A DNA stretch of 64,000 nt from Setoptus koraiensis (GCA_048013815.1 CM106586.1:21576001-21640000); one strand, 5' to 3'; positions 5,705 through 56,300 are shown, numbered from the stretch's first letter. The notes: generated by a model not told the origin, from the letters alone. Numbers and translations: made by a program.

Positions 5705-8293
5705 ATGTCGAATCAGTGGAACAATGAGGGAATGGGAGGTCTCATTGCCTTGGTCAATAGGCTACATGAGGCATTCATTACCATAGGAACCAATTTAGCT
5801 TTAGACTTGCCGCAGATAGCCGTCATAGGCGGGCAATCGGCCGGCAAATCTTCCGTTTTAGAGAATTTTGTTGGTAAAGATTTTTTGCCTAGAGGATCGG
5901 GAATAGTTACAAGACGACCGCTAATATTGCAACTGATATATTCGCCAGATGTGGAATATGCTGAATTCGCGCATTGCAGAGGCAAAAAATTCACTGATTT
6001 CGAATTGGTCAATAAAGAAATCCAAGATGAAACTGACAGAGGCACTGGCAATAATAAGGGTATCTCGCCCATACCCATTAGTTTGAGGATCCATTCGCCT
6101 CACGTTCTCAATTTAACTCTCATAGATTTGCCCGGGCTAACAAAGGTTCCCGTTGGAGATCAACCACCAGATATCGAAAATCAGATACGTGAAATGCTAT
6201 CGACATTTATTAAACGTGATAATTGCTTAATTTTGGCCGTCACACCAGCCAACCAAGATCTCGCCACTAGTGATGCGCTTAAACTGGCCAAAGAGGTTGA
6301 CCCAGAAGGATTAAGAACCATCGGTGTTATAACAAAGCTTGATCTTATGGATGAAGGAACCGACGCAAGGGATATTCTTGAGAATAAGGTTTTTCCTCTT
6401 CGAAGAGGTTACATAGGCGTTATCAATCGATCTCAAAAAGATATTGAAGGGCGTAAAGATATTAAAGCCTCCTTAGATAATGAAAGGAGGTTCTTCTTAG
6501 CTCATCCATCTTATCGGCACATGGCCGATCGTTTGGGCACACCTCATCTGCAGCGCGTTCTAAACCAGCAACTCACTAATCATATAAGGGACACTTTACC
6601 ATCGTTGAGAGATAAATTTCAGAAACAGCTCTTAGTACTGGAGAAGGAAGTTGGAGAATTCAAAAACTTTCGTCCTGACGATCCAACGAGAAAGACCAAA
6701 GCTATGCTACAAATGATCCAATCACTTCAAAATGACTTTGAGCGCTCGATTGAAGGCTCTGGAAACTCGGTTATAAACACCGCCGAGTTATCCGGAGGAG
6801 CTAAAATTAATCGATTATTCCACGAAAGATTTCCTTATGAATTAGCAAAGATGGAATTCGATGAAAAAGAATTGCGTCGTAAAATAGCTTTAGCAATTCG
6901 TAACATTCATGGTATCCGTGTCGGTCTGTTTACACCAGACATGGCTTTTGATGCTATTGTAAAAGACCAAATAGGCAATATGAGAGAGCCGTCGCTAAAA
7001 TGTGTCGACCTCGTTGTTCAAGAACTTACTAACGTCTTGAGGAAAGTCGCAGAAAGAATGAATCGATTTCCGAGATTAAGAGAAGAAACTGAGAGAATTA
7101 TTACCACACATATCAGAGAAAAGGAACAAGTAGCTAAAGATCAACTAATGCTCCTCGTAGATGTTGAGCTAGCATATATGAACACAAATCATGAAGATTT
7201 CATAGGATTCTCAAACGCTCAACCTAATAGCGACTCTTCTAATGCTACGAGACAGCATGTGAAGTTGGGTAACCAGGTCATAAGAAAAGGTTGGATGTGT
7301 ATTCACAACTTGGGAATCATACGTGGAGGTTCCAAAGATTACTGGTTTGTCTTGACTTCAGAATCTTTGAGCTGGTACAAGGACGACGAAGAAAAAGATA
7401 AAAAGTATATGCTACCTCTTGACAACTTAAAGATAAGGGACATAGAAGCAGGATTTATGTCAAGACGCTGCACATTTTGTTTGATTAATTCAGATAACCG
7501 CAATGTGTACAAAGATTTTAAACAACTCGAACTCTCATGTGAGTCTCAAGAGGAAGTCGATTCTTGGAAAGCATCTTTTCTGCGCGCAGGTGTTTATCTT
7601 GAACGTTCTAACAGGGTTTCTAACGATTCTGAGGAGGGCACCAACCATAGTCAAAGCGATACCTCCTTAGATCCTCAACTGGAGCGTCAAGTGGAAACAA
7701 TTCGAAATCTTGTTGACTCTTATATGAAGATTACAACGAAGACTTTTCGTGATATCGTACCAAAACTAATCATGCACGTCATAATAAATTCAACGAAAAG
7801 TTTCATATTTGGAGAACTGTTAGCGGCTCTTTATGCAGCTGGCGATCAATCAACCTTGATGGAGGAATCACCAGAAGAAGAGCGAAGGCGTCAGGATTTG
7901 TTGAAAACCTATCATGCCTGCAAAGAAGCTTTGAAAATCATTGGAGATGTCAGCATGCAGACTACTTACTCACCTGCACCTCCACCCGTCAAGAACGATT
8001 GGCAATCATCAAGTATCACACCGTCTCCTGCACCTCCATCTCCTAAAATCTTATCATCGCACAATCGTGGACCGCCGCCTCCCCCTCAAAATCGCGCGGT
8101 TCCACTACCAGCAGCTGGAAGGCCAGCACCTTCTATTCCAAATAGAACGGGTTCTCAAAGAGGTGGCAACCCTCATATGCCATCTCTCCCTCCCAGGGTT
8201 CAACAACAGGTACAAGACGCTGTTTCTAACACCGTTCAACAAGCTGTAACAAATAGTATAAATGATGCATTCAGAGGTAAACTTAAAATGTAA
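5705..8293 (+). CDS. shi: Dynamin (shibire orthologue), 862 aa, intronless
   Basis: [23 protein letters not shown] and TKLD GTPase motifs, middle domain, PH domain (RKGWM...YWFVLT), GED ([12 protein letters not shown]) and a proline-rich tail. Confidence 0.98.
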
Positions 8294-18225: not shown

Positions 18226-18948
18226 CTAAAACTCTGCAGCTGGGCATATACTATTGTTGAGACACTGCGAACACTTTGGCCTAAGAGGTGTACATACGGT
18301 CTGTCCAAAACCAACTAAAAGATGATTGATCTCTGCCCAATAATCTCTAGGCAGCCAACTTTCCAGGGCTTTTCTCGTATCTTCGGGAGTTTTAGTTTTC
18401 TTTGGAACCCATTGAAGACGCTGGGCTATTCTGTGTACGTGAGTGTCGACTCCAATTCCCGACAGAACATTCCAGGCTTCCAACATGCATAAATGAGCCA
18501 TCTTTGGACCAACTCCAGGCAACTTGCACAAGTCCTCAAGAGTTTTCGGTATGTCTGAGTTGTATTCGTCCTTTAAAATTTGTGCCACTTTCTTGATATA
18601 AGTGGCCTTGCGACGATAAAATCCCACTGGATAAATCATGGATTCTATCTCTTTCTCACTCTTTTGTAGTATTCCGTCGACATTGCCACAACCCTCCTCT
18701 TTGAGCTTTTGAACTGCACTCCAGGTGATCGGGTCTTTCGTTTGGCTAGACAACATTAATGATACAAGTATCTGAAAGCGTCTATCAACCCCATCGGCCG
18801 TGTGCACCTGATCACAACCCATCGTATCAACTGGAGCTGGGTATTTAGCGCGCACATCTCGTATGTTGGCTATTGTGGCCTCCCAATTTGCTGGGGGACT
18901 TCCTATTAATATCGGATTTTTAGGAATAGAGCTGGATGCACGCGGCAT
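18226..18948 (-). CDS. NTHL1: Endonuclease III-like DNA glycosylase, 240 aa
   Basis: LMLSSQTKD, VGFYRRKA, HhH motif LPGVGPKMA, VDTHVHRI, and a 4Fe-4S motif C-x6-C-x2-C-x5-C (CTPLRPKCSQCLNNSIC). Confidence 0.96.
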   Translation of the reverse strand: MPRASSSIPKNPILIGSPPANWEATIANIRDVRAKYPAPVDTMGCDQVHTADGVDRRFQILVSLMLSSQTKDPITWSAVQKLKEEGCGNVDGILQKSEKEIESMIYPVGFYRRKATYIKKVAQILKDEYNSDIPKTLEDLCKLPGVGPKMAHLCMLEAWNVLSGIGVDTHVHRIAQRLQWVPKKTKTPEDTRKALESWLPRDYWAEINHLLVGFGQTVCTPLRPKCSQCLNNSICPAAEF

Positions 18949-27460: not shown

Positions 27461-28081
27461 ATGACTATCCTTTCAAAGAACCTACGCACACTATTTACAA
27501 TAAAAAACGTATCTTGTGTAACAAAGAGATGGTCAGGACACAACAACCTTGAGCCTCACCCGTCAAATTTTAGCTGGTTAAAATGGAAGGATATGGTGCA
27601 TCTTTACACTATGATAGCCGTCATACCCCTTGGTTTGTTTACAACGATCGTAAACATAAGGGCTAATCCTGAACTCGCTGAAATACCAGAGGGTTATGAA
27701 CCCAGACATTGGGAATATTATAAGCACCCCATTACGAGGTTTATAGCTAGATACGTATTGGAACATCAAGATGAGGAGGACGAAACTTTGTTAGGTTTCA
27801 TGGATATAGAGTCGGAGCGCCAGATACTGAGGCAGCTGACCCATCGCATAAGCGAGGTGATGGCCTATTACGGTGACCATCGGTCCCTCTACTTTATGCC
27901 ATATCAGACTGCTGATCATATTCGCGAGGGTAGAGAAGACTATAGGTTTATAGGTGATTGGCACCTTGGAGCTCCGAGTACTTTATTCACAAACCTCAGC
28001 AAAGGGAATCAGCTTGAGGATGCCATGCCTACCGAGGCACTGATAGAAAGTAATGAGGAGACGAAAAAATTTGTTAAGTGA
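27461..28081 (+). CDS. NDUFB5: NADH dehydrogenase 1 beta subcomplex subunit 5 (SGDH)
   Basis: ELAEIPEGYEPRHWEYYKHPITRFIARY signature, with an N-terminal transit peptide and one TM helix. Confidence 0.95.
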   Translation: MTILSKNLRTLFTIKNVSCVTKRWSGHNNLEPHPSNFSWLKWKDMVHLYTMIAVIPLGLFTTIVNIRANPELAEIPEGYEPRHWEYYKHPITRFIARYVLEHQDEEDETLLGFMDIESERQILRQLTHRISEVMAYYGDHRSLYFMPYQTADHIREGREDYRFIGDWHLGAPSTLFTNLSKGNQLEDAMPTEALIESNEETKKFVK

Positions 28082-28256
28082 TCCTATATTCTCTATATAT
28101 TAGATATGTTTGTGCAGCTGTTGAATTACGGAATTTGTCATGATGTATCAGTTAGTTTAAGTCATAAATTTATGTAGGTCTAATCTTTAATGATCAAATG
28201 TAATCTAGTTAAACACATATATCTATGTAAAATATCTATATAATCATTAAAATCAA

Positions 28257-29618
28257 TCAGGGCGTTTGAGTTTGATTCAGCAGTCGTTGAGATGAAGTTG
28301 AACGCCGCCTGGGGCTTTTGGGCCAGGGCATGGGCCACTCGAATACGCGAGGAACAGTCAATGTAGCCGAGTCGCAGCAAGAACATAGACCATTTCTTCT
28401 GGTGGTGCATCTAATGTGGTTGAATTCGAAATATTTGAACAAAGGCCACCACCATACCCTGGATAGATAGTTGGTATGAGTTGGAAATCTCAAACTATGA
28501 TTGTAAACGATTGTATGGAATATCCAAAAAGTGCGTGTTGTCACGTAGTAGGCAAGTACTATATCTATTGTGTAGTGTCCACGAGCAATCAAAATAAATA
28601 TCACACCAATAATTGAACTCGACAGAGCTAATATGTTGAAAGCCCTCCAAACCAATGTCCGGCACCTTAATGGCATGAGATACTCACGAAGAGTTAGATA
28701 ACCTGTAGATGCAAAGAATGAGGTTAGAACTTGGGTTTGCGGGGCTTCTAAAGTTGGAGAGAATGATCGAGGGGATGGATGACTAAGATATATTGACTTA
28801 CAAAAGGTGAGTATAACAGTGTGACCAGAGTATAAGTAGTCGCCGCAATAAATCTGCTTGCCATTTATCGAAAGACCAAATCCTAACATCATGTGAAAAA
28901 CTCTACTGAATATAATCTGTATATAAAGGCCTGTAGTTAACTGATCAGGCGAGTGACTAGGGTCATCTGATATCTTAGGCGCACAGTAATCTTTCTTTAG
29001 CAATGGGACCTGTGTCGACATCATACAGATGGCTCGATACATGTATAATAGTCCAATGATGAGGCATAAACGCCTAAATATTATCACACGATATCTATGA
29101 AGGAACAATAGAATGAATAGTGAGAATGTTTGTATGCTGATGATGTACTCTGCAACATCCAATCCCCAAGCAGCTTCTGGTAGTATCACGTGAAGTATGT
29201 CTGGCAGTGGATCACTCTGTAGAGGTGCTCGTTCATGAATTATTGCTAAAACCAGAAAATTAAGTATCATATTAGTCAACAAAAAAAGTAGGGCGAGGCC
29301 ATTCTGAACAACACAGATATCCTCCTTCGGGTTATGGTCATCGGATTCAGGAGATCCAATCTGTAATACTGTCTGTTCATCTTCTTCTCTGGTAATAGCA
29401 TCGAATTTTCTTTTGAGTGAGCTAGCTTTTAACTTATCATCATCCGAATCACTGTTCGTTTTGATTGGGGTCTGAAAAGCAGTTGTGGATGATTGAGGCA
29501 CTACTCTATCCGCAAGGTTAGCACCAAATACAAAACTTGATGATTTTCCCGATTTCGTTGCATTCGTTTCGTCATGAGGCTTGAGGCCCGAAGGTTTAAG
29601 AGAGGGGGGTTCCTGCAT
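28257..29618 (-). CDS. Sphingomyelin synthase family (SGMS1/2-type) with a RANBP3-derived N-terminus; exons 29618-28802 and 28702-28257
   Basis: All four SMS motifs are present: PLPD, RRLCLIIGLLYMYRAICMMST, CGDYLYSGHT and HYTIDIVLAYY. A 99-nt in-frame intron runs GTAAGT(28801)...CTACAG(28703). No SAM domain. The first about 88 aa are homologous to the gene at 31018. Confidence 0.9.
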   Translation of the reverse strand: MQEPPSLKPSGLKPHDETNATKSGKSSSFVFGANLADRVVPQSSTTAFQTPIKTNSDSDDDKLKASSLKRKFDAITREEDEQTVLQIGSPESDDHNPKEDICVVQNGLALLFLLTNMILNFLVLAIIHERAPLQSDPLPDILHVILPEAAWGLDVAEYIISIQTFSLFILLFLHRYRVIIFRRLCLIIGLLYMYRAICMMSTQVPLLKKDYCAPKISDDPSHSPDQLTTGLYIQIIFSRVFHMMLGFGLSINGKQIYCGDYLYSGHTVILTFCKSIYLSHPSPRSFSPTLEAPQTQVLTSFFASTGYLTLREYLMPLRCRTLVWRAFNILALSSSIIGVIFILIARGHYTIDIVLAYYVTTRTFWIFHTIVYNHSLRFPTHTNYLSRVWWWPLFKYFEFNHIRCTTRRNGLCSCCDSATLTVPRVFEWPMPWPKSPRRRSTSSQRLLNQTQTP

Positions 29619-29698
29619 CCCTCAAATTGTTTTGGATACAAATCTCTGGTTAAATGTCTCTGGTTGGTATAAATGAATGATATTATAAATCTAATCTT
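29398..29698 (-). repeat. Left arm of a 301-bp perfect inverted repeat (partner 30938-31238)
   Basis: Base-by-base comparison found no mismatch. It covers 80 bp upstream of the ATG plus about 73 codons. Confidence 0.95.
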
Positions 29699-30937
29699 TG
29701 ATTAATCTATAAATATGTAATCACTAAATGTTGTATATTGCCATTTTCCCATATCGTTCCATTCAAGACATACCACAACAGGGAAAATGTTGAATTGCGA
29801 AAAAAAAAATCTAATCTAATCTAGTTTTCAGACCTTCAACTTTTGCGCGAATTTCAAAAGATATAATCACTCAATAGTGTCGGAAAATAATTACGCCATC
29901 ACCAGTGTTAGCTCTAATTCGATCTAAATTGCATTTGATTTGTCAGAGTTTTCTAGACTGTTGGTATGTTGTATTCAATATACACACTATACTATGTTGA
30001 AACAAACACATTCAAAGTGTAACATGTCGGTACGAATTTCTATTCTTATGTATAAATTTATAGGTTCTGTCTATCTATCTAAGGTAAATCAATTAAAGTT
30101 CAGACTATTATATATATATATATATATATATGTATATCGGTATATAGCAACGACAGCAACAATAATATCAACACAGTTGTTACTCGGTCGGAGTTGCTGG
30201 CCCCGCCCTGCTGCAACAACTACGAATAAACGTTGCTGCTGTAGTTACACAGTGAGATAATCTTGATATTGATATTCTCAATACAGAAATCTCGATACTC
30301 AGCTTTCAGAGCCTACTGTGCTAGGCTTTGATGTAAAGTATTTGTCCGGTGTTGCCTAAACCTATTCGTTTCGATTCTTACTTCAACGAGGTGTTGTAGA
30401 GAATATTGTAAATTAGATGCTCAGAGAGCTAATTCTAGAGAATGAAATAAACATTTCTTGCTCCTTAAATAAACTGCAAACTTGTCCACGCTGTTGCTTC
30501 TCGACTAACGAGATCATCACAGATTTGAAAGAACGAAAAATTGATATGTCAGATGATCATATCAGAACCTACAGTTGCAAATATTGTTGATTGTGCCATA
30601 AAACAAGCCTTTGCTCATCGAGTTGATAAAACGAAGCAAATGTGCACACTCTGAGCGATCATCGTATATTACGTAATGATCGATCTAATGCTGATGGTAG
30701 CAGCTACAGTGTATTGTTGTCGTACATGATAAACATGTAAAATGTCAATAAAGGCAATAAAGAACTTGTTGTTAGTTTGCTTTGGTCCTCAACCTTGAAT
30801 ACCGCTACTCATTATGAATTAAATTTAGCGCGCAGTTCTGCGCACAAGGGGTGGCAATATTTTTTCCCACTGTCCATATATTCAATCACACGATTGTTTA
30901 TCCTATTGTTATTGTTATTATTATTGTTATTTGTTTG

Positions 30938-31238
30938 AAGATTAGATTTATAATATCATTCATTTATACCAACCAGAGACATTTAACCAGAGATTTGTAT
31001 CCAAAACAATTTGAGGGATGCAGGAACCCCCCTCTCTTAAACCTTCGGGCCTCAAGCCTCATGACGAAACGAATGCAACGAAATCGGGAAAATCATCAAG
31101 TTTTGTATTTGGTGCTAACCTTGCGGATAGAGTAGTGCCTCAATCATCCACAACTGCTTTTCAGACCCCAATCAAAACGAACAGTGATTCGGATGATGAT
31201 AAGTTAAAAGCTAGCTCACTCAAAAGAAAATTCGATGC
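30938..31238 (+). repeat. Right arm of the 301-bp perfect inverted repeat (1239-bp spacer)
   Basis: Reverse complement of 29398-29698. Confidence 0.95.
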
Positions 31239-32004
31239 CATCACTGGCGAAGAGTGTGAACAAACTGTTCTACAAACGCCGGTGAAATTATTTGTTTGGA
31301 ATCTAAGCTCATCTTCCTGGGCAGAAAAGGGGCGCGGCTTGCTCAAGTTGAATGACCCGAAAACCGAAAATACCTTGATCGAAAAAGATCAAAAAAAAGT
31401 AGACGAAGAAGATAATCATGATGATGCTACAAAAGATGTAGTGCTAGAATTCCCAAGATTGATTATGCGTATAAGCGGCACATTGCGGATCATTTTGAAT
31501 GTAGCAATCAATCCAGAACATTTTAAAATTATAGGTGAAGATGATAAATCAAAAGTTTTTCGTTTCTCCGATAGTAGAGAACTGTACGCAGTCAGCGGTA
31601 GCGCGAAAGAAATTCTTGGACTAAGGCGAGCAGTTGAATGGCGGCTTCAGTCATCCAGAGAAAACAAATCAGCTCGATGCCCCAAAATGCAAGAAAAGAA
31701 AGAGAAGACGTCGCCAAAGGCGAGCTCACCGGAGGGCACCCCAACAGAGGACACCCCAGCAGATGGAACCCCATCGGAAAACACCCCAGCAGAGGGAACC
31801 TCAACGAAGGACACCCCAAGAGGGGGAACCCCAACGGAGGCCACCCCAACAGAGGGAACCCCGACGGAGGCCACCCCAACAGAGGAAACCCCAACGGTGG
31901 ACACCCTAACAGAGGAAACCCCAACGGTGGACACCCTAACAGAGGGAACCCCAACGGAGGACACCCCAAAAGAACAACCCTCACCAGAGAAAAAGTTACT
32001 TTAA
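31018..32004 (+). CDS. RANBP3: Ran-binding protein 3-like (FxFG motif plus RanBD) with a C-terminal pentapeptide repeat, 328 aa
   Basis: SFVFGANLADRV (RANBP3 FVFGQNLRDRV type) and ITGEECEQTVLQTPVKLFVW...WAEKGRGLLKLND...RLIMRISGTLRIILN, the RanBD signature. Confidence 0.88.
   Translation: MQEPPSLKPSGLKPHDETNATKSGKSSSFVFGANLADRVVPQSSTTAFQTPIKTNSDSDDDKLKASSLKRKFDAITGEECEQTVLQTPVKLFVWNLSSSSWAEKGRGLLKLNDPKTENTLIEKDQKKVDEEDNHDDATKDVVLEFPRLIMRISGTLRIILNVAINPEHFKIIGEDDKSKVFRFSDSRELYAVSGSAKEILGLRRAVEWRLQSSRENKSARCPKMQEKKEKTSPKASSPEGTPTEDTPADGTPSENTPAEGTSTKDTPRGGTPTEATPTEGTPTEATPTEETPTVDTLTEETPTVDTLTEGTPTEDTPKEQPSPEKKLL
31726..31965 (+). repeat. Coding minisatellite, 16 x 15 bp (consensus CCAACRGAGGRMACC; P-T-E-x-T)
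   Basis: Units read SPEGT PTEDT PADGT PSENT PAEGT STKDT PRGGT PTEAT PTEGT PTEAT PTEET PTVDT LTEET PTVDT LTEGT PTEDT. Confidence 0.95.
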
Positions 32005-32036: not shown

Positions 32037-35000
32037 TTATAGATATAAACTTGCAGCGAAGACGATATCTCTTTTTATGTACGTTATTGACTCTGCAAAC
32101 TTGTTTTCCAGATCGGTATTACCAATGACCCTACTAGCTTGACACATCTGGCGTAACAACTCCTCCAATCTACGCATGCACCTTATAATTGATCCCTCAA
32201 AGGCATCTGTCATTTTGCAAAGCTGGGCGAAACTTGCTCCTCTCGACCATGCATGAACTACATCCATCAAATTTGGTTTGAACTTTTCTATATATTCTTT
32301 CTCATCCAACTCAAGCTTGGCCTCTTTGGAAACTGAAGCGATTCTTCTAGCTAAGTCCTGCATCGTCCTCAAGGGTTGATCTAATTCTTCGGTCAGCCGC
32401 GCCATCTGCTCAGTTTTTTCGTCGAAAACAAAACAACTTAATAATGCGTTAATCTGATAAGGAGTCAAGTCGTTGAACGCTCCATTAAATAGCATTTCAG
32501 TGAGGAGTAATTCGTCCCCACTTGTTATTTCACAAGCAACACGTCCTTTGATATCAATAACATCTTGAGCGGAGCAGTAACCGAGTCTGCGAAGAACCCT
32601 TTTCATGCATTTTAGTTCGTCCATCTGAAGAAGACTTCGAGCTTTTTGTAGATTCTGTTTTGTAGTTTCAATTTGGTCACCTAGTAGACTTTTTTCCATG
32701 TATTGTTCGAGTCGCTTCTGATCGATTTGGCCAAATTCCTTGAGGCGCTTCTCGTAGGTGTTGATCTTGCAAACTAGTGAGTTGAATTCTTCGCTTTTGA
32801 TCTGCATATCTTCAATCGGATCGAGCAATGGTACTTCTCCACCAAATTGTTTCTTTACAGCATTCACAGTCTTAGCGACAGTCTGTCTTTGTTCGAGGCG
32901 CTTCAGATCGTTTGGAATCTTCAATCTGACAGAGCTGATCTTGAATATGTTATCTAAACTTATGTTGACGACTCTCATTTGTGCGGTTTCTTTTGATTGT
33001 GGTGGTACCACAAGCAAGAAATGAATACTACCCATATAAACAACAACAACCACATAAAAAGCTTACACAACCAAATAAACTAAGCTAACAAAAAAGAAGA
33101 CAAAAAGACAAAACCAAGAGACCCATCACAAAAACAAGTAAAAACCCTCAAAAAAAAAAAACAATAACAAAACTACAGAACAAAAAAAATACAACAGCAT
33201 ACCACAAGACCACAAAAAACAAACAACAGAACACACAAAACCAGAACAGAAAAAGAAAAAACAAAACACACCCATTAAACCCCCAACAACCCGGCCACCC
33301 CCCCCACCATCACACACCACCACCCCCACAACCATATACGACACACCCAACCACACGCCCCCCACGACCCCCCACCCCCCCCCGACCCAGCCCCGCAAAC
33401 CGCGCCCACCCCCACCGCCCCCCACACGCCCCCCCCCACCCCCCCCGCCACCCCCCCCTCCACCCCCCCCCCCCCCCCTCCCCCCCCCCCACAACCCCCC
33501 CCCCCCCGTCCCTCCCCCCCCCCCCCCCCCCCTCCCATCCCCCCCCAGCCCCGACCCCCCGCCCCCCACCCCCCACCCCCCCCCCCCTCCCTCTCCCCCC
33601 TCCCCCCCCCCCATCACCTCCCACCCCCATCCCCACATCCCCCCTCCCACCCCCACCCCCCCCCCTCCCCCACCCCCCCCCCACCTCACCCCCCCCCCTC
33701 ACCCCTCCCCACACCACCCCACCCCACACTCCCCTCCCCACCCACCCCTCACCCCACCCCCACCCCCCCCCCCCCCTCCCCACCCTCCCCCCCCCACCCC
33801 CCCCTCTCCCCACCACCCCCTCCCCACTCACCCCTCCCCCCCCCCACCCCACCACACTCCCACACCCCCCCCACTCACCCTCCTCCCCCCCCCCACTCCA
33901 CCCTCCCCCCCCCTCCCCACCCCCCCCCCTCCCCTCCCCACTCACACACACCCCCCCTCACCTCCCCTCTCCCTCTCCCCCCTCCCCCCCCCCACACCTC
34001 TCCCCCCCACCCCCCCCCCTCCCACCCCCCCCCCTCCCCTCCCCACTCCCCACTCCCCCCCACTCCTCACACTCTCCCCTCCCCCCCCCCTCCCCCCCCC
34101 ACTCCCCCCCCCCACCCCACCCCCCCCTCCCCCCCCCACCCCCCCCTCCCCACCTCCCCTCCCCCTCTCTCTCTCCCCCACCCCCCCCCACTCACACTCT
34201 CCCCTCCCCACCCCCCCCCCTCTCCCCCCCCCTCCCCCTCTCCCCACTCCCCCCCCCACCACCCCCCCCTCACCTCACTCCCCCCCCCCTCTCTCTCCAC
34301 CCCCTCCCCCCCCCCTCCCCTCCCCCCCTCCCCCCCCCACCCACCCCCCCCCTCCCCCCCCCCTCTCCCCCACACCCCCCCTCCCCACCCCCCCCCACCC
34401 CACCCTCTCACCCCCCCCTCCCCTCCCCCCCCCACCACTCCCACCCCCCCCTCCCCTCTCCCCTCTCCCCACCCCTCTCTCTCCCCCCCCCCTCTCCCCC
34501 CCCCCTCACCCCCCCCCCACTCTCCCCTCACTCCCCTCCCCCCCCCCTCCCCCTCCCCTCTCCTCTCTCACCCTCACCCCCCCCCCTCTCTCTCTCCTCA
34601 CCCCCCACCTCCCCACCCCCACCCCCCCCTCTCTCCCCCCACCCCCCCCTCTCCCCCCCCCCACCCCCTCCCCTCCCCTCACCCCTCCCCTCCCCCCCTC
34701 ACCTCCCCCCCCCCCCTCCCCCCACTCTCCCCCCCCTCCCCTCCCCCTCCCCTCTCCCCTCCCCCCCCCACCCCCCTCCCCCCCCCACCCTCCCTCCCCC
34801 CCCCTCCCCCCCCTCTCCCCCTCCCCTCTCCTCCCCCCCCCTCCCCCACCCTCCCCCCACCCCCCCTCTCTCTCTCCCCCCCCTCCCCCCCTCTCCCCCC
34901 CCCCTCCCCTCCCCCACCCCCCCCCACCCCCCCTCACCCCCCTCTCTCTCTCCCCCCCCCCTCTCTCCTCCCCCCCCCACCTCCCTCCCACCCCCCCCCT

Positions 35001-36585
35001 CTCCCCCCCCTCCCCCCACCCCCCCACCCCCTCACCCCCCTCCCCCCCACTCTCCCCCCCCCCTCCCACTCACCCCTCCCCCACCCCCCCCCTCCCCCCC
35101 CCCACCCCCCCCCCTCCCCCCTCTCCCCACCACCCTCTCCCCCACCCCCCACCCCCCCCTCTCCCCCACACCCCCCCTCCTCCTCCCCCCCCACCCCCCC
35201 CTCCCTCCACTCTCTCTCTCCCCTCCCCCCCCCCACCCCTCCCCCCCCCCTCCCCCCCCCCTCTCCCCTCTCCCCTCCCCCCTCCCACTCCCCTCACCCC
35301 CCCCCCACCCCCCCTCTCCCCACCCCCCCCACCCCTCTCCCCCCCCCCACCCCACTCCTCCCCTCCCCCCCACCCCTCCTCCTCTCACCCCACCCCCTCT
35401 CCCCCCCCCCTCCCCTCCCCCCCCACTCCCCCCCCCCTCCCCCCCCCACCCCACCACCCCCCCCCTCCTCCCCCCCCACCCCTCACTCCCCCCCCCCACT
35501 CCCCTCCCCCCCACCCCTCTCCCCCCCCACTCCCCTCCCCTCCCCTCCCACTCTCCCCTCCCCCCCCCCTCACCCCTCCCCTCCCCCCCCTCACCCCCCC
35601 CGCCCCCCCCCACCCCCTCCCCCCCCACTCCCCTACCCCACCCCCCCCTCCCCCCCCCCTCCCCACCCCCTCCCCCCCCCCTCACCCCCTCCCCTCCCCC
35701 CCCCTCCCCTCACCCCCCCCCTCACCCCTCTCTCTCTCTCCCCTCCCTCTCCCCTCCCCCCCCCCCTCTCTCTCTCTCACTCTCCCCTCCCCCCCCACCC
35801 CCCCTCNNNNNNNNNNNNNNNNNNNNNNNNNNNNNNNNNNNNNNNNNNNNNNNNNNNNNNNNNNNNNNNNNNNNNNNNNNNNNNNNNNNNNNNNNNNNNN
35901 NNNNNNNNNNNNNNNNNNNNNNNNNNNNNNNNNNNNNNNNNNNNNNNNNNNNNNNNNNNNNNNNNNNNNNNNNNNNNNNNNNNNNNNNNNNNNNNNNNNN
36001 NNNNNNNNNNNNNNNNNNNNNNNNNNNNNNNNNNNNNNNNNNNNNNNNNNNNNNNNNNNNNNNNNNNNNNNNNNNNNNNNNNNNNNNNNNNNNNNNNNNN
36101 NNNNNNNNNNNNNNNNNNNNNNNNNNNNNNNNNNNNNNNNNNNNNNNNNNNNNNNNNNNNNNNNNNNNNNNNNNNNNNNNNNNNNNNNNNNNNNNNNNNN
36201 NNNNNNNNNNNNNNNNNNNNNNNNNNNNNNNNNNNNNNNNNNNNNNNNNNNNNNNNNNNNNNNNNNNNNNNNNNNNNNNNNNNNNNNNNNNNNNNNNNNN
36301 NNNNNNATACTCAGCCACGACAGTTTTGCCGGCCGAGGTGTGAGCTGATACGAGGACGCTCTGGCCATTCTCTATGCACATGATGGATCTATTCTGAAAT
36401 GAATCTAGCGTAAATTTGTAAGTTTTGACAGGCTTAAAATTTGATTTGAGTTCAACATAATACGAGTTAACAGGTATGACAACCTCATGCAAACAACCAC
36501 CCTCGGGTATCTCTAGATTATATACAGTGGTCCGTGGCGATAGCTCCACAGGTTCAATGGCATCTTCATCGGGCTTGTTGTCCAT
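32037..36585 (-). CDS. MTREX: Exosome RNA helicase MTR4 (SKIV2L2); only the 5' part (36585-36307) and 3' part (about 33030-32037) are assembled
   Basis: 5' part: YKFTLDSFQ...[17 protein letters not shown] (motif I). 3' part: KOW/arch [62 protein letters not shown]. Confidence 0.95.
33030..35806. other. Low-quality C-rich base-calling junk (assembly artefact)
   Basis: Real MTR4 sequence decays through an A/C-rich zone into aperiodic poly-C with scattered A/T and almost no G, ending at an N gap, in the middle of an essential gene. Confidence 0.9.
35807..36306. other. Scaffold gap (500 N)
   Basis: Exactly 500 N. Confidence 1.
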
Positions 36586-53332: not shown

Positions 53333-56300
53333 TTAAACTATCCGCTCAACCTTTTCCCATAGTCTATCACGTTCCTCAAACATCTATATCAAACAGTAGT
53401 AGAAGAGAAAATATTAGCTGAGTCACTTTGATCAGCGCTTTGATATGTTGTATACTATTTATACTAATTGTGAAGGCTTACCATTGATATCCATTCTTTA
53501 TCTTTCATGCATTTATCTAGGAGAACACTATGTTGCGGTTCATCGTCGACGATAAGGCTCAGCACCTGTCAAGTTTAGAAGATACGTCAGTCTCTGATAC
53601 ATAAGATATTTAGTAAAATGCTATAAAGAGAATCGACTTACCTTTTCATTAGCCTTAATATAAAGTTTCCATTTAAAATGTTGCATCTCAGAGTAGAGTC
53701 TAACTTTTTCGTTGCATGAGTTACATAATTTGATGGTTTTTAAGTCCTGTTGATCTGTCGATTTTTCAATGGCTTTTAGACTTTTTCGCTCATAAGATTC
53801 CTTTGTGAAACTTGTTATGTATGCGCTCGACACATTTTGACACCCCTAAATGATTGTTGAAGAAGTCTTTAAGTTAGAGACTACCTAGGATATGCGGAAA
53901 TCTTACGAGAAAAAAAGTTTGATGACAAACTTACCATGCAATGATGTTCCTTTTCTTCGTTTTCTGTCTCTTTTGTGATTGTGTTAGGATAACGATCGAG
54001 ACAGCTTATAATTTCTTGTTCTAGTTTCAATTTGCTGATAAGTTTTGCTTTGTTACGCTGTATCACATCATCGATGACTCTTGAACTTGACAAATAGTAG
54101 TCCAGGTTATCTATAGGATATGAATGCGAAGATTGTTCGATTAGAAATCATTCTAGACAAAATGAAAATAATGAAAGCTGAATTGGTTATAATGGTTGTA
54201 CTCACCAGGCTCGGGGATGGACCAGAACTGATTATCCAGACACATATTAAGTAGGATTTGGATGTAAACCGCGTAGTGCGAATCATAAAACTCAATTGCT
54301 TCCTTAGGTGTCTGTAGATTTAGGGAAAGCCGTTCCACCTGAATCTGATTTCTACTATGGTGGGTAACTTTAACATCTACACCAACATAATCCCCTTTTA
54401 TAATAGGATTCCAACCTTTATATTGATGCGTATTCTCATATAAGACTAGTCCGCCATCCTCAGCTGGCTCAATAGGTTCGAATTGTTGTAACAAGTTGTT
54501 ACCTTCTATTCTCCACAAATGAGGGTTTTTGTTTTTGAGATCTTTTTTTGCTATTACAAAGTCAGTTGTCCTCATCAAACCTTCGATGACAGACTCTTTC
54601 CTTTCAGAGGATCTTCTACGGCTAGATTTGTGACCACTTCCACCGCTAGAACCACTTCCGTTGCTAGTCGCTTTTGTGGCAGGGCTTATACTGGAGCCTG
54701 AACCAGAGATGAGACAAATAACTGGCTTATCTGATGAAAGAGAAGGGCTAAGATCTTGCTTTGCAACGCTGTTAGTCGAGGTAGAACTCAAACTCAAGGC
54801 CGGTGAAACTACAGACTCCAGCTTAGTTTGCTGCGCAGAGACAGAATTGAGTGACTCTTGTACCAGATCCGGCTCACAGCTTTCAGTTTTCTTACGTCTC
54901 CTCGATGGTTTATCACCGCTGGATTCACTTGGGCGCTTCCTTTTGAGTTTAGGTTTAGCGTCTCCAACAGTGTTTTTCAAGGATTCATCGATCTCACTGT
55001 CAGTTTTGGGACCTTCTGTGCATGTTTCAACCGCTTTGACAGTGGTTTCTTGAGCCTTTGCCTCGGACGAATCGTTTTCTACGGTACTATTATTGCTTTT
55101 AGACTTGATCTTACGTTTATGTGGGACATGGCCGGAGGTTTTATCTCGGGTATTTGTGGTTTCAGCATTAGATGTTAATGTTTTCTTGTCAATATTACTT
55201 GATGTATTCTCACAAATCGATTGATTAGGTTCAGGTGGCGGTTGCTCATGCATAGTTGCACTGTCTAAAAAAGTTGATTGAGAAGAGCTAGTCATAGTCG
55301 ATTGATTATCTACAATCTGGAGAGGAGTTGATTCAGATTGATTTTGTGCAGAGAACTGTGAGTGATTAGAATCTCCAACCAATTGTTTTTCCATAGTCTT
55401 CTTAGATTCCTTTGGTGCAGTGNNNNNNNNNNNNNNNNNNNNNNNNNNNNNNNNNNNNNNNNNNNNNNNNNNNNNNNNNNNNNNNNNNNNNNNNNNNNNN
55501 NNNNNNNNNNNNNNNNNNNNNNNNNNNNNNNNNNNNNNNNNNNNNNNNNNNNNNNNNNNNNNNNNNNNNNNNNNNNNNNNNNNNNNNNNNNNNNNNNNNN
55601 NNNNNNNNNNNNNNNNNNNNNNNNNNNNNNNNNNNNNNNNNNNNNNNNNNNNNNNNNNNNNNNNNNNNNNNNNNNNNNNNNNNNNNNNNNNNNNNNNNNN
55701 NNNNNNNNNNNNNNNNNNNNNNNNNNNNNNNNNNNNNNNNNNNNNNNNNNNNNNNNNNNNNNNNNNNNNNNNNNNNNNNNNNNNNNNNNNNNNNNNNNNN
55801 NNNNNNNNNNNNNNNNNNNNNNNNNNNNNNNNNNNNNNNNNNNNNNNNNNNNNNNNNNNNNNNNNNNNNNNNNNNNNNNNNNNNNNNNNNNNNNNNNNNN
55901 NNNNNNNNNNNNNNNNNNNNNNGATGATGTCGCAGATATCGGGGGTATATTGCTTCTATCTGGAGTATGAGATGTTGGTGGATGACCTCGCACTGATTGA
56001 TGTGGCAATGGCGATGCAGTAGGTGATTGTTGATGAAGGCCATGATGTTGCTGGAATCCACTTGACGTAGTTTGAGGCGATGGTAAAGTCCCTAGAGGTG
56101 GCTGCTGTGTCATAGGGGAGGCCCAATACTGTGATGCCAATACTGAGGGTGAATACTGTGAGTAATGAGATTGTTGAGGGTGTTGTTGGAATTGAGAATT
56201 TTGCTGTGGTAATTGTGATTGAGACGGAGTTGCTGTAGGTTGTATAGGTTGATAGAGCCCTGAGGTCCTTGGCATCTGCTGCTGCTGCAAGCTCTGATGA

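Follow-up and report, generated by a model that had tools for sequence, protein, structure and literature searches.

The sphingomyelin synthase (SMS)-family gene of the window, the 64,000-nt stretch of Setoptus koraiensis DNA that was analyzed, is a real, lineage-specific chimeric gene in which sequence copied from a neighboring RanBP3-like gene replaces the start of the ancestral gene. We consider it likely that this expressed chimera arose through an inverted partial duplication of the RanBP3-like 5' end, that the copy is maintained by gene conversion, and that its main role is to supply a start codon and leader. The genome is gene-dense and intron-poor; acariform mites give its best matches, and, judged from the sequence, an eriophyoid-type mite is likely. 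An open reading frame (453 aa unspliced) occupies 28257-29618 on the minus strand, from an ATG at 29618 to a stop codon at 28257. An earlier sequence-only reading of this DNA had claimed an in-frame chimera, and the frame does read without a stop from the RanBP3-like head into the SMS-family body. The features of the locus are as follows.

27461-28081, plus strand: NDUFB5 gene, the tail-to-tail neighbor of the SMS gene, an adjacency conserved in relatives.
28257-29618, minus strand: chimeric SMS-family gene, from the borrowed ATG to the stop codon; spliced product of 420 aa.
28257-28702, minus strand: exon 2, with motif D4 (HYTID..) and the C-terminal tail.
28703-28801, minus strand: intron of 99 nt, GT..AG, removed in RNA contig record 1 of run X7.
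28802-29618, minus strand: exon 1, with the RanBP3-derived head, the native juxtamembrane residues, and the first transmembrane (TM) helices up to motif D3 (..SGHTVILTF).
29313-29360, minus strand: native SMS N-terminal residues (IGSPESDDHNPKEDIC..), which align just past the start codon of unfused relatives.
29361-29399, minus strand: diverged tail of the copy, codons 74-86 (AITREEDEQTVLQ), with the fusion point after codon 86.
29398-29698, minus strand: SMS-side arm, 301 nt that are 100% identical to the reverse complement of 30938-31238.
29619-29976, minus strand: transcribed leader on the SMS side, of which 29699-29976 is unique and outside the arm; six short upstream ATGs.
29699-30937, no strand: unique spacer of 1239 nt between the arms, with no similarity to the relatives' loci.
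30938-31238, plus strand: RanBP3-side arm, identical to the SMS-side arm.
31018-32004, plus strand: intact RanBP3-like parent gene, 328 aa, with a Ran-binding domain and with N-terminal motifs conserved in seven mite orthologues.

By every sequence test, the chimera is a member of the SMS family. The body contains a PAP2_C domain (PF14360, 47.1 bits against a Pfam cut-off of 27, E 3.6e-12) and matches the structure of human SMSr (8IJQ, E 3.7e-25) over two stretches that cover motifs D3 and D4, with D1 (PLPD) in the first stretch. The catalytic motifs, which the earlier reading had described as kept, are intact: PLPD, CGDxxxSGHT, and HYxxD are invariant across the chimera and 13 relatives. In the numbering of the unspliced frame, the invariant residues are P139, D140, C258-D260, S264-T267, H348, Y349, and D352, and they include the catalytic His, His, and Asp (H266, H348, and D352). 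The enzyme keeps 76 of the 77 columns that are invariant among the 13 relatives, which is within the relatives' own range, and in a maximum-likelihood tree its branch is not long (0.29), with seven unfused proteins forming its sister clade. Because of this column conservation and the unremarkable branch length, the enzyme carries no sign of decay or relaxed constraint. The body has 238 homologues, the closest named ones being from the acariform mites Oppia, Halotydeus, Brevipalpus, and Panonychus. Hydropathy analysis of the chimera places hydrophobic segments at residues ∼100-130, 153-175, 178-203, and 289-325. An AlphaFold2 model of the unspliced frame, computed from a 14-row alignment, is helical and of low confidence (mean pLDDT 51, pTM 0.30). 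A search of NCBIfam returned nothing, as expected for a eukaryote, and a scan for bacterial-type promoters and terminators is not applicable to a eukaryotic sequence.

The presence of an intron, also part of the earlier reading, is supported by two observations. The 33 intron-encoded residues of the unspliced frame are missing from all relatives in the alignment with the 13 relatives, and an RNA contig skips 99 nt at this position, with GT..AG ends on the minus strand once the cut is moved by 2 nt. The same single intron position is found in the window (28703-28801), in locus L007 (5998-7134) and L008, and in the genes behind P0019 and P0020, and the intron is absent from L001 (184-1182) and L003 (10001-10984). 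Judged from these gene structures, the pattern is one of lineage-specific loss among these mites.

The next in-frame Met of the chimera is M117, which is located within the first hydrophobic helix (∼residues 100-130), and eight out-of-frame ATGs are found between the borrowed ATG and M117. The enzyme is therefore dependent on the borrowed ATG, and the earlier claim to this effect is borne out, as there is no other in-frame ATG upstream of TM1.

The origin of the head is apparent from the adjacent gene. Residues 1-86 of the chimera match the product of the RanBP3-like ORF (31018-32004, plus strand) at 84 of 86 positions, a level of sequence similarity that is far beyond chance, and similarity to the parent gene stops entirely past codon 86. 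The two copies form a head-to-head inverted repeat with arms at 29362-29698 and 30938-31274, separated by 1239 nt. Of the 301 identical nt on the SMS side, 80 lie upstream of the ATG and 221 are coding, extending from codon 1 to the second base of codon 74. This identical run is followed by a diverged tail of 13 codons, which reads AITREEDEQTVLQ in the chimera and AITGEECEQTVLQ in the RanBP3-like parent, with nine silent and two amino-acid differences. The sequence-only reading had put the copied piece at about 88 codons of RanBP3 homology; the homology stands, and the length is revised to the 86 codons accounted for by the identical run and the diverged tail.

The contrast between the two parts of the copy is sharp, with 0 differences in 301 nt of the identical run and 13 in 39 nt of the tail (Fisher p ∼1e-18). 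The chimera has the ancestral Asp found in all orthologues (GEEDE), whereas the RanBP3-like parent now has a Cys at that position. Saturated silent sites in the tail, together with retention of the ancestral Asp in the chimera, therefore point to an old duplication, after which gene conversion has continued to act on the 301 nt. Despite its divergence, the tail retains 11 of 13 residues (P ∼5e-4 for at least 9 of 13 changes being silent if all 13 were neutral). When the share expected on the chimera's branch is considered, the silent excess has a P of 0.01-0.03 over a stretch of only 13 codons. On the basis of these 13 codons, the pattern suggests purifying selection on the tail, that is, that the head is translated and constrained in the chimera.

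Two further observations concern the copied sequence itself. Within the copied 80 upstream bases (29635-29690 and 30946-31001), TATA-like text (tttataatatcattcatttata) can be seen by eye ∼50-65 nt before the ATG. By this visual reading, the arm may bring the core promoter of the RanBP3 gene along with its leader. At the joint, the RanBP3 residues TV(F/L)Q and the native SMS residues SVFV could reflect microhomology, which is suggestive only. The spacer at 29699-30937 contained no tRNA and no Rfam family, and blastn and tblastx searches with it returned nothing.

The parent gene encodes a Ran_BP1 domain (PF00638, E 2.6e-8), and its best matches among solved structures are those of the human RanBP3 Ran-binding domain (RBD; 2CRF and 2Y8F, E ∼2e-13). 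Three N-terminal motifs are common to the parent and its seven orthologues from public assemblies, namely MQxxPxLKxSGLKP, VFGxNLxxRV, and KRKFDAITGEE.E. The parent also has features of its own. The C-terminus (31701-31989) contains a 15-nt tandem repeat (5 aa, TPTEG/TPTEA-type) in at least 11 copies, which is absent from the orthologues, where unrelated acidic tails are found instead. In addition, an acidic insertion of ∼24 residues (..EKDQKKVDEEDNHDDATKD..) is located in the Ran-binding domain (∼31360-31460, residues ∼117-147) and occurs in none of the seven orthologues.

Downstream of the parent, the assembly is of poor quality. The region 33055-36306 is A/C-rich, then near-pure poly-C (GC up to 0.80, GC skew -1), and ends in a 500-N gap (35807-36306). 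The gene for an MTR4/SKI2-type helicase is interrupted here, with the C-terminus (aa ∼630-951) at 32037-33002 and the N-terminus (aa 4-81) at 36307-36525, both on the minus strand, and with ∼550 residues missing from the middle. This interruption is a contig-end assembly artefact and not biology. A second 500-N scaffold gap is found at 55423-55922.

Comparison with related species indicates that the fusion is specific to this lineage. The related SMS genes are unfused in all cases found (P0001-P0008, P0019, P0020, and loci L001-L004 and L007-L009; 50-65% identity), in agreement with the earlier claim of lineage specificity. These relatives begin MET(S/F).., ∼16-21 residues ahead of a conserved IC.LQ, and no RanBP3-like sequence was found within 6-10 kb upstream of their SMS genes. 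In the alignment, the native start falls a few codons ahead of the fusion point, and the copy thus took the place of these native codons. A HMMER search with the 102-residue head, run exhaustively against 1.84 billion representatives, returned only five proteins of 100-311 aa, all RanBP3-like. These align at their own N-termini and are thus RanBP3-like proteins rather than chimeras.

The gene neighborhood provides additional context. SMS and NDUFB5 form a tail-to-tail pair that relatives share, which makes the chimera the positional orthologue of their SMS gene. In relatives, the order is Nth(-) SMS(+) NDUFB5(-) dynamin(+), with the Nth glycosylase gene upstream of SMS in L003 and L007. In the window, Nth (18235-18897) and dynamin (5717-8272) are both on the NDUFB5 side, 8.5-20 kb away. 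This gene order implies at least two rearrangements, one of which would have had its breakpoint at the SMS 5' end. Relatives also keep RanBP3 and MTR4 as a tail-to-tail pair. Taken with the changed order of Nth and dynamin, this conserved pairing points to the SMS 5' end as a rearrangement breakpoint in this lineage.

The transcript evidence consists of contigs assembled from a single run (X7); they carry no strand information and break at the 301-nt repeat. Run X7 behaves as RNA because the intron is skipped and 29977-30930 is uncovered. Record 1 (1928 nt) aligns to 28100-28700 and 28800-29427 with zero mismatches, is spliced, is colinear over the fusion point, and stops 30 nt inside the identical arm. 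The RanBP3 mRNA is represented by record 3, which has precisely these 30 nt in common with record 1 and whose loose end carries the tail in its RanBP3 form. Record 2 is a single unbranched unitig over 29398-29976. The contigs thus branch precisely at the onset of identity between the SMS-side and RanBP3 mRNAs, and these records are the graph expected for two mRNAs with an identical 5' segment. The ATG region and the SMS body are located on separate records, and none spans the whole 301-nt repeat. The junction and the 301-nt identity are nonetheless real in this independent sample. The sequence-only reading had proposed looking for RNA over 29400-29300, and an X7 contig runs unspliced through the junction at this position. 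A different upstream exon spliced onto the SMS, which that reading named as a possible refutation, is not seen in X7, the one informative RNA data set. The text tattacag|ATT at the junction was considered as a splice acceptor for such an exon and was ruled out in X7, since the contig runs straight through it.

On the SMS side, transcripts reach at least 278 nt upstream of the arm, whereas RanBP3 transcripts seem to start inside the arm or just upstream. A transcript start at or beyond 29976 would place six short upstream ORFs before the main ATG. Within this leader, the X7 contig has one extra A in the A10 run at 29799-29809, which is either an assembly homopolymer error or a strain difference. 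Runs X1, X2, and X4, whose samples and studies differ from the likely source sample, also contain all sampled 31-letter words (share 1.00) of the sequence from 28257 to 29420, which crosses the junction. Plant-surface and air metagenomes hold part of the sequence (word shares of 0.27-0.28). The RNA-seq runs X21, X24, and X27, which carry the same label as X7 ("organism C"), have 0 reads on the locus, and the label is probably that of a host and not of the mite. Runs X7-X9 would then probably be host samples that also carry the mite.

Our current working model is conditional on these observations. At least 80 nt of upstream sequence and 86 codons of the RanBP3-like gene would have been copied in an inverted partial duplication, and the copy would have landed head-to-head ∼1.2 kb from its parent, where it joined the SMS-family gene in frame, a few codons downstream of the original start. 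The copy would have replaced the native SMS ATG, and the joint would lie at the SMS 5' rearrangement breakpoint. Since this old duplication, conversion between the two arms would have held the 301 nt identical. Apart from the one spliced intron, the mRNA would be colinear from upstream of the borrowed ATG to beyond the junction. A ribosome starting at that ATG would make a protein of 420 aa with a hydrophilic head of ∼86 residues followed by the intact SMS catalytic core. We infer that what the borrowed piece mainly provides is a start codon and a leader, perhaps along with proximal promoter elements. On this view, the head would be an extension that is tolerated and maintained by selection, and it may have a specific targeting role.

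The head is hydrophilic and rich in Ser, Asp, Lys, Pro, and Thr (mean hydropathy -0.99), and it is probably disordered, mainly judging by this composition; pLDDT is low over most of the head, within an overall poor model. The N-termini of SMS1 and SMS2 face the cytosol, and by analogy with this topology the head is expected to be cytosolic. A role in functional retargeting would follow if the N-terminal motif, the FVFG, and the KRK patch of the head bound CRM1 or karyopherins at the cytosolic face. Part of the enzyme would then be retained at nuclear pores or shifted to the inner nuclear membrane, resulting in local production of sphingomyelin and diacylglycerol. The sequence-only reading had put forward tethering to export or pore machinery, or relocalization to the nuclear envelope. 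We regard this as speculative and unlikely, although the cytosolic orientation of SMS N-termini, the presence of the whole pre-RBD region of mite RanBP3 in the chimera, and the conservation of the tail peptide despite saturated silent sites all favor it. The earlier statement that FxFG motifs of RanBP3 bind CRM1, which also favors retargeting, is correct for the human protein, in which Crm1 binds mainly at the F domain, with its two FxFG motifs, and also at the N domain (PMC2150735; PMC3045386). However, the chimera has a single FG motif (FVFG, residues 29-32) where the mite RanBP3 orthologues have HVFG, and therefore the conserved element is VFGxNLxxRV rather than FxFG. The Ran_BP1 domain is absent from the chimera (Pfam), and only residues 71-86 (∼16 residues) align with the start of the human RanBP3 RBD. 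The KRK patch, as read from the sequence, falls outside the minimal K-K/R-x-K/R classical NLS pattern. Furthermore, conservation of the 301 nt can be explained by conversion from a constrained parent, without selection on the chimera. Because of the one FVFG, the HVFG of the orthologues, the RBD remnant, and the KRK mismatch, we rank tethering below plain capture, in which the copy would bring a start codon, a leader, and a proximal promoter and the head would be tolerated. The sequence-only reading had offered capture of a promoter and start codon as its alternative. This idea is the better fit to a breakpoint at the SMS 5' end, although SMS-side transcripts also reach past the copy on its upstream side.

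The remaining explanations question whether the head is a protein segment, whether the repeat is a regulatory element, or whether the locus is correctly assembled. It is quite improbable that the head is untranslated, with the copy serving as a 5' leader or promoter only and the enzyme starting elsewhere (at a non-AUG codon or M117), or with the gene decaying. The six upstream ATGs of a long leader would be consistent with this, and arm identity maintained by conversion is uninformative on coding in the chimera. However, the frame is kept through the junction, the tail outside the conversion tract shows the silent bias described above (11 of 13 residues, nine silent changes), the eight out-of-frame ATGs and the TM1 position of M117 disfavor a later start, and conservation of the enzyme body matches that of its relatives. 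A smaller chance still is given to a flip-flop element, in which the 301-nt arms would let the 1239-nt spacer invert and thereby swap the upstream regulatory DNA of the divergent genes, with the fusion as a by-product. Perfect inverted arms around a short unique spacer would suit such an element, as would the finding that only one spacer end is joined to an arm in RNA. On the other hand, there are no reads for the second orientation, gene conversion alone accounts for the identity, and inversion would be compatible with our main explanation rather than exclusive of it. We find it hardly credible that the junction or the perfect arm identity results from misassembly or polishing, even though the A/C-rich and poly-C junk from ∼33055 and the 500-N gap in MTR4 begin ∼1 kb past the RanBP3-like gene. 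The X7 RNA contigs reproduce the junction of SMS, tail, and arm with zero mismatches, and the RanBP3 mRNA merges at the exact start of identity. The arm is a single unbranched unitig in X7, the full word share over the junction recurs in X1, X2, and X4, and a tail that is diverged yet conserves its peptide is unlike the product of an artefact. Misassembly, the other refutation named in the sequence-only reading, is thus argued against by independent X7 contigs that cross the junction. A fold-back long-read artefact, suggested by the junk at the contig end, was ruled out, as different genes lie beyond the arms and RNA contigs confirm both junctions.

The preferred reading, an expressed chimera whose borrowed 5' end is maintained by conversion, can be compared with several known systems. 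The body resembles the SMS1/SMS2/SMSr family in its PAP2_C domain, its D1-D4 residues with the His-His-Asp set, its multiple hydrophobic helices, and its similarity to SMSr and to arthropod SMS1- and SMS2-like proteins. In contrast to the family, its N-terminus is RanBP3-derived, unlike both the short native start in the closest mite relatives and the SAM domain of SMS1 and SMSr. In common with the CRM1 export cofactor RanBP3 (Yrb2 in yeast), it has the complete pre-RBD region as found in the mite RanBP3 orthologue, including the N-terminal motif, VFGxNLxxRV (FVFG), and KRKFDAIT.EE. It differs from them in that it has ∼16 RBD residues and is not Ran-binding, and in that it has one FG motif as compared to the two FxFG motifs of human RanBP3 (PMC2150735). 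The chimera is not a member of the RanBP3 family because it lacks the RBD.

Chimeric genes that arise from partial duplication include Drosophila jingwei and Sdic. As in those cases, the parent is intact, and a different gene has received, in frame, a 5' fragment together with upstream sequence and is transcribed in this form. Unlike in those cases, the recipient is the ancestral single-locus orthologue rather than a spare copy, and the copied piece is inverted, adjoins its parent, and is kept identical to it by gene conversion. Concerted evolution of head-to-head inverted duplicates is exemplified by the Drosophila Hsp70 pairs and by Y-chromosome palindromes, which likewise have a perfect-identity tract with a sharp boundary and much older divergence beside it. 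Here, by contrast, conversion is confined to a 5' end that two genes have in common, the genes being unrelated elsewhere. The combination of a CRM1-cofactor N/F region with an SMS-family enzyme was found in none of the protein collections and literature searched. What is new is this domain combination, the remodeling of the ancestral orthologue itself, and the conversion-maintained identity with the parent.

Taken together, the locus is a clean, datable case of a gene born by fusion within a highly streamlined animal genome. An ancestral single-locus enzyme gene, having lost its own start at a breakpoint, now relies on a copied piece of its neighbor, and the short tail that escaped conversion is a record of both age and coding constraint. 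If the head is inert, the gene would be an example of how compact genomes repair broken 5' ends. If instead retargeting were true, it would be a natural experiment tying the nuclear transport machinery to sphingolipid synthesis at the nuclear envelope.
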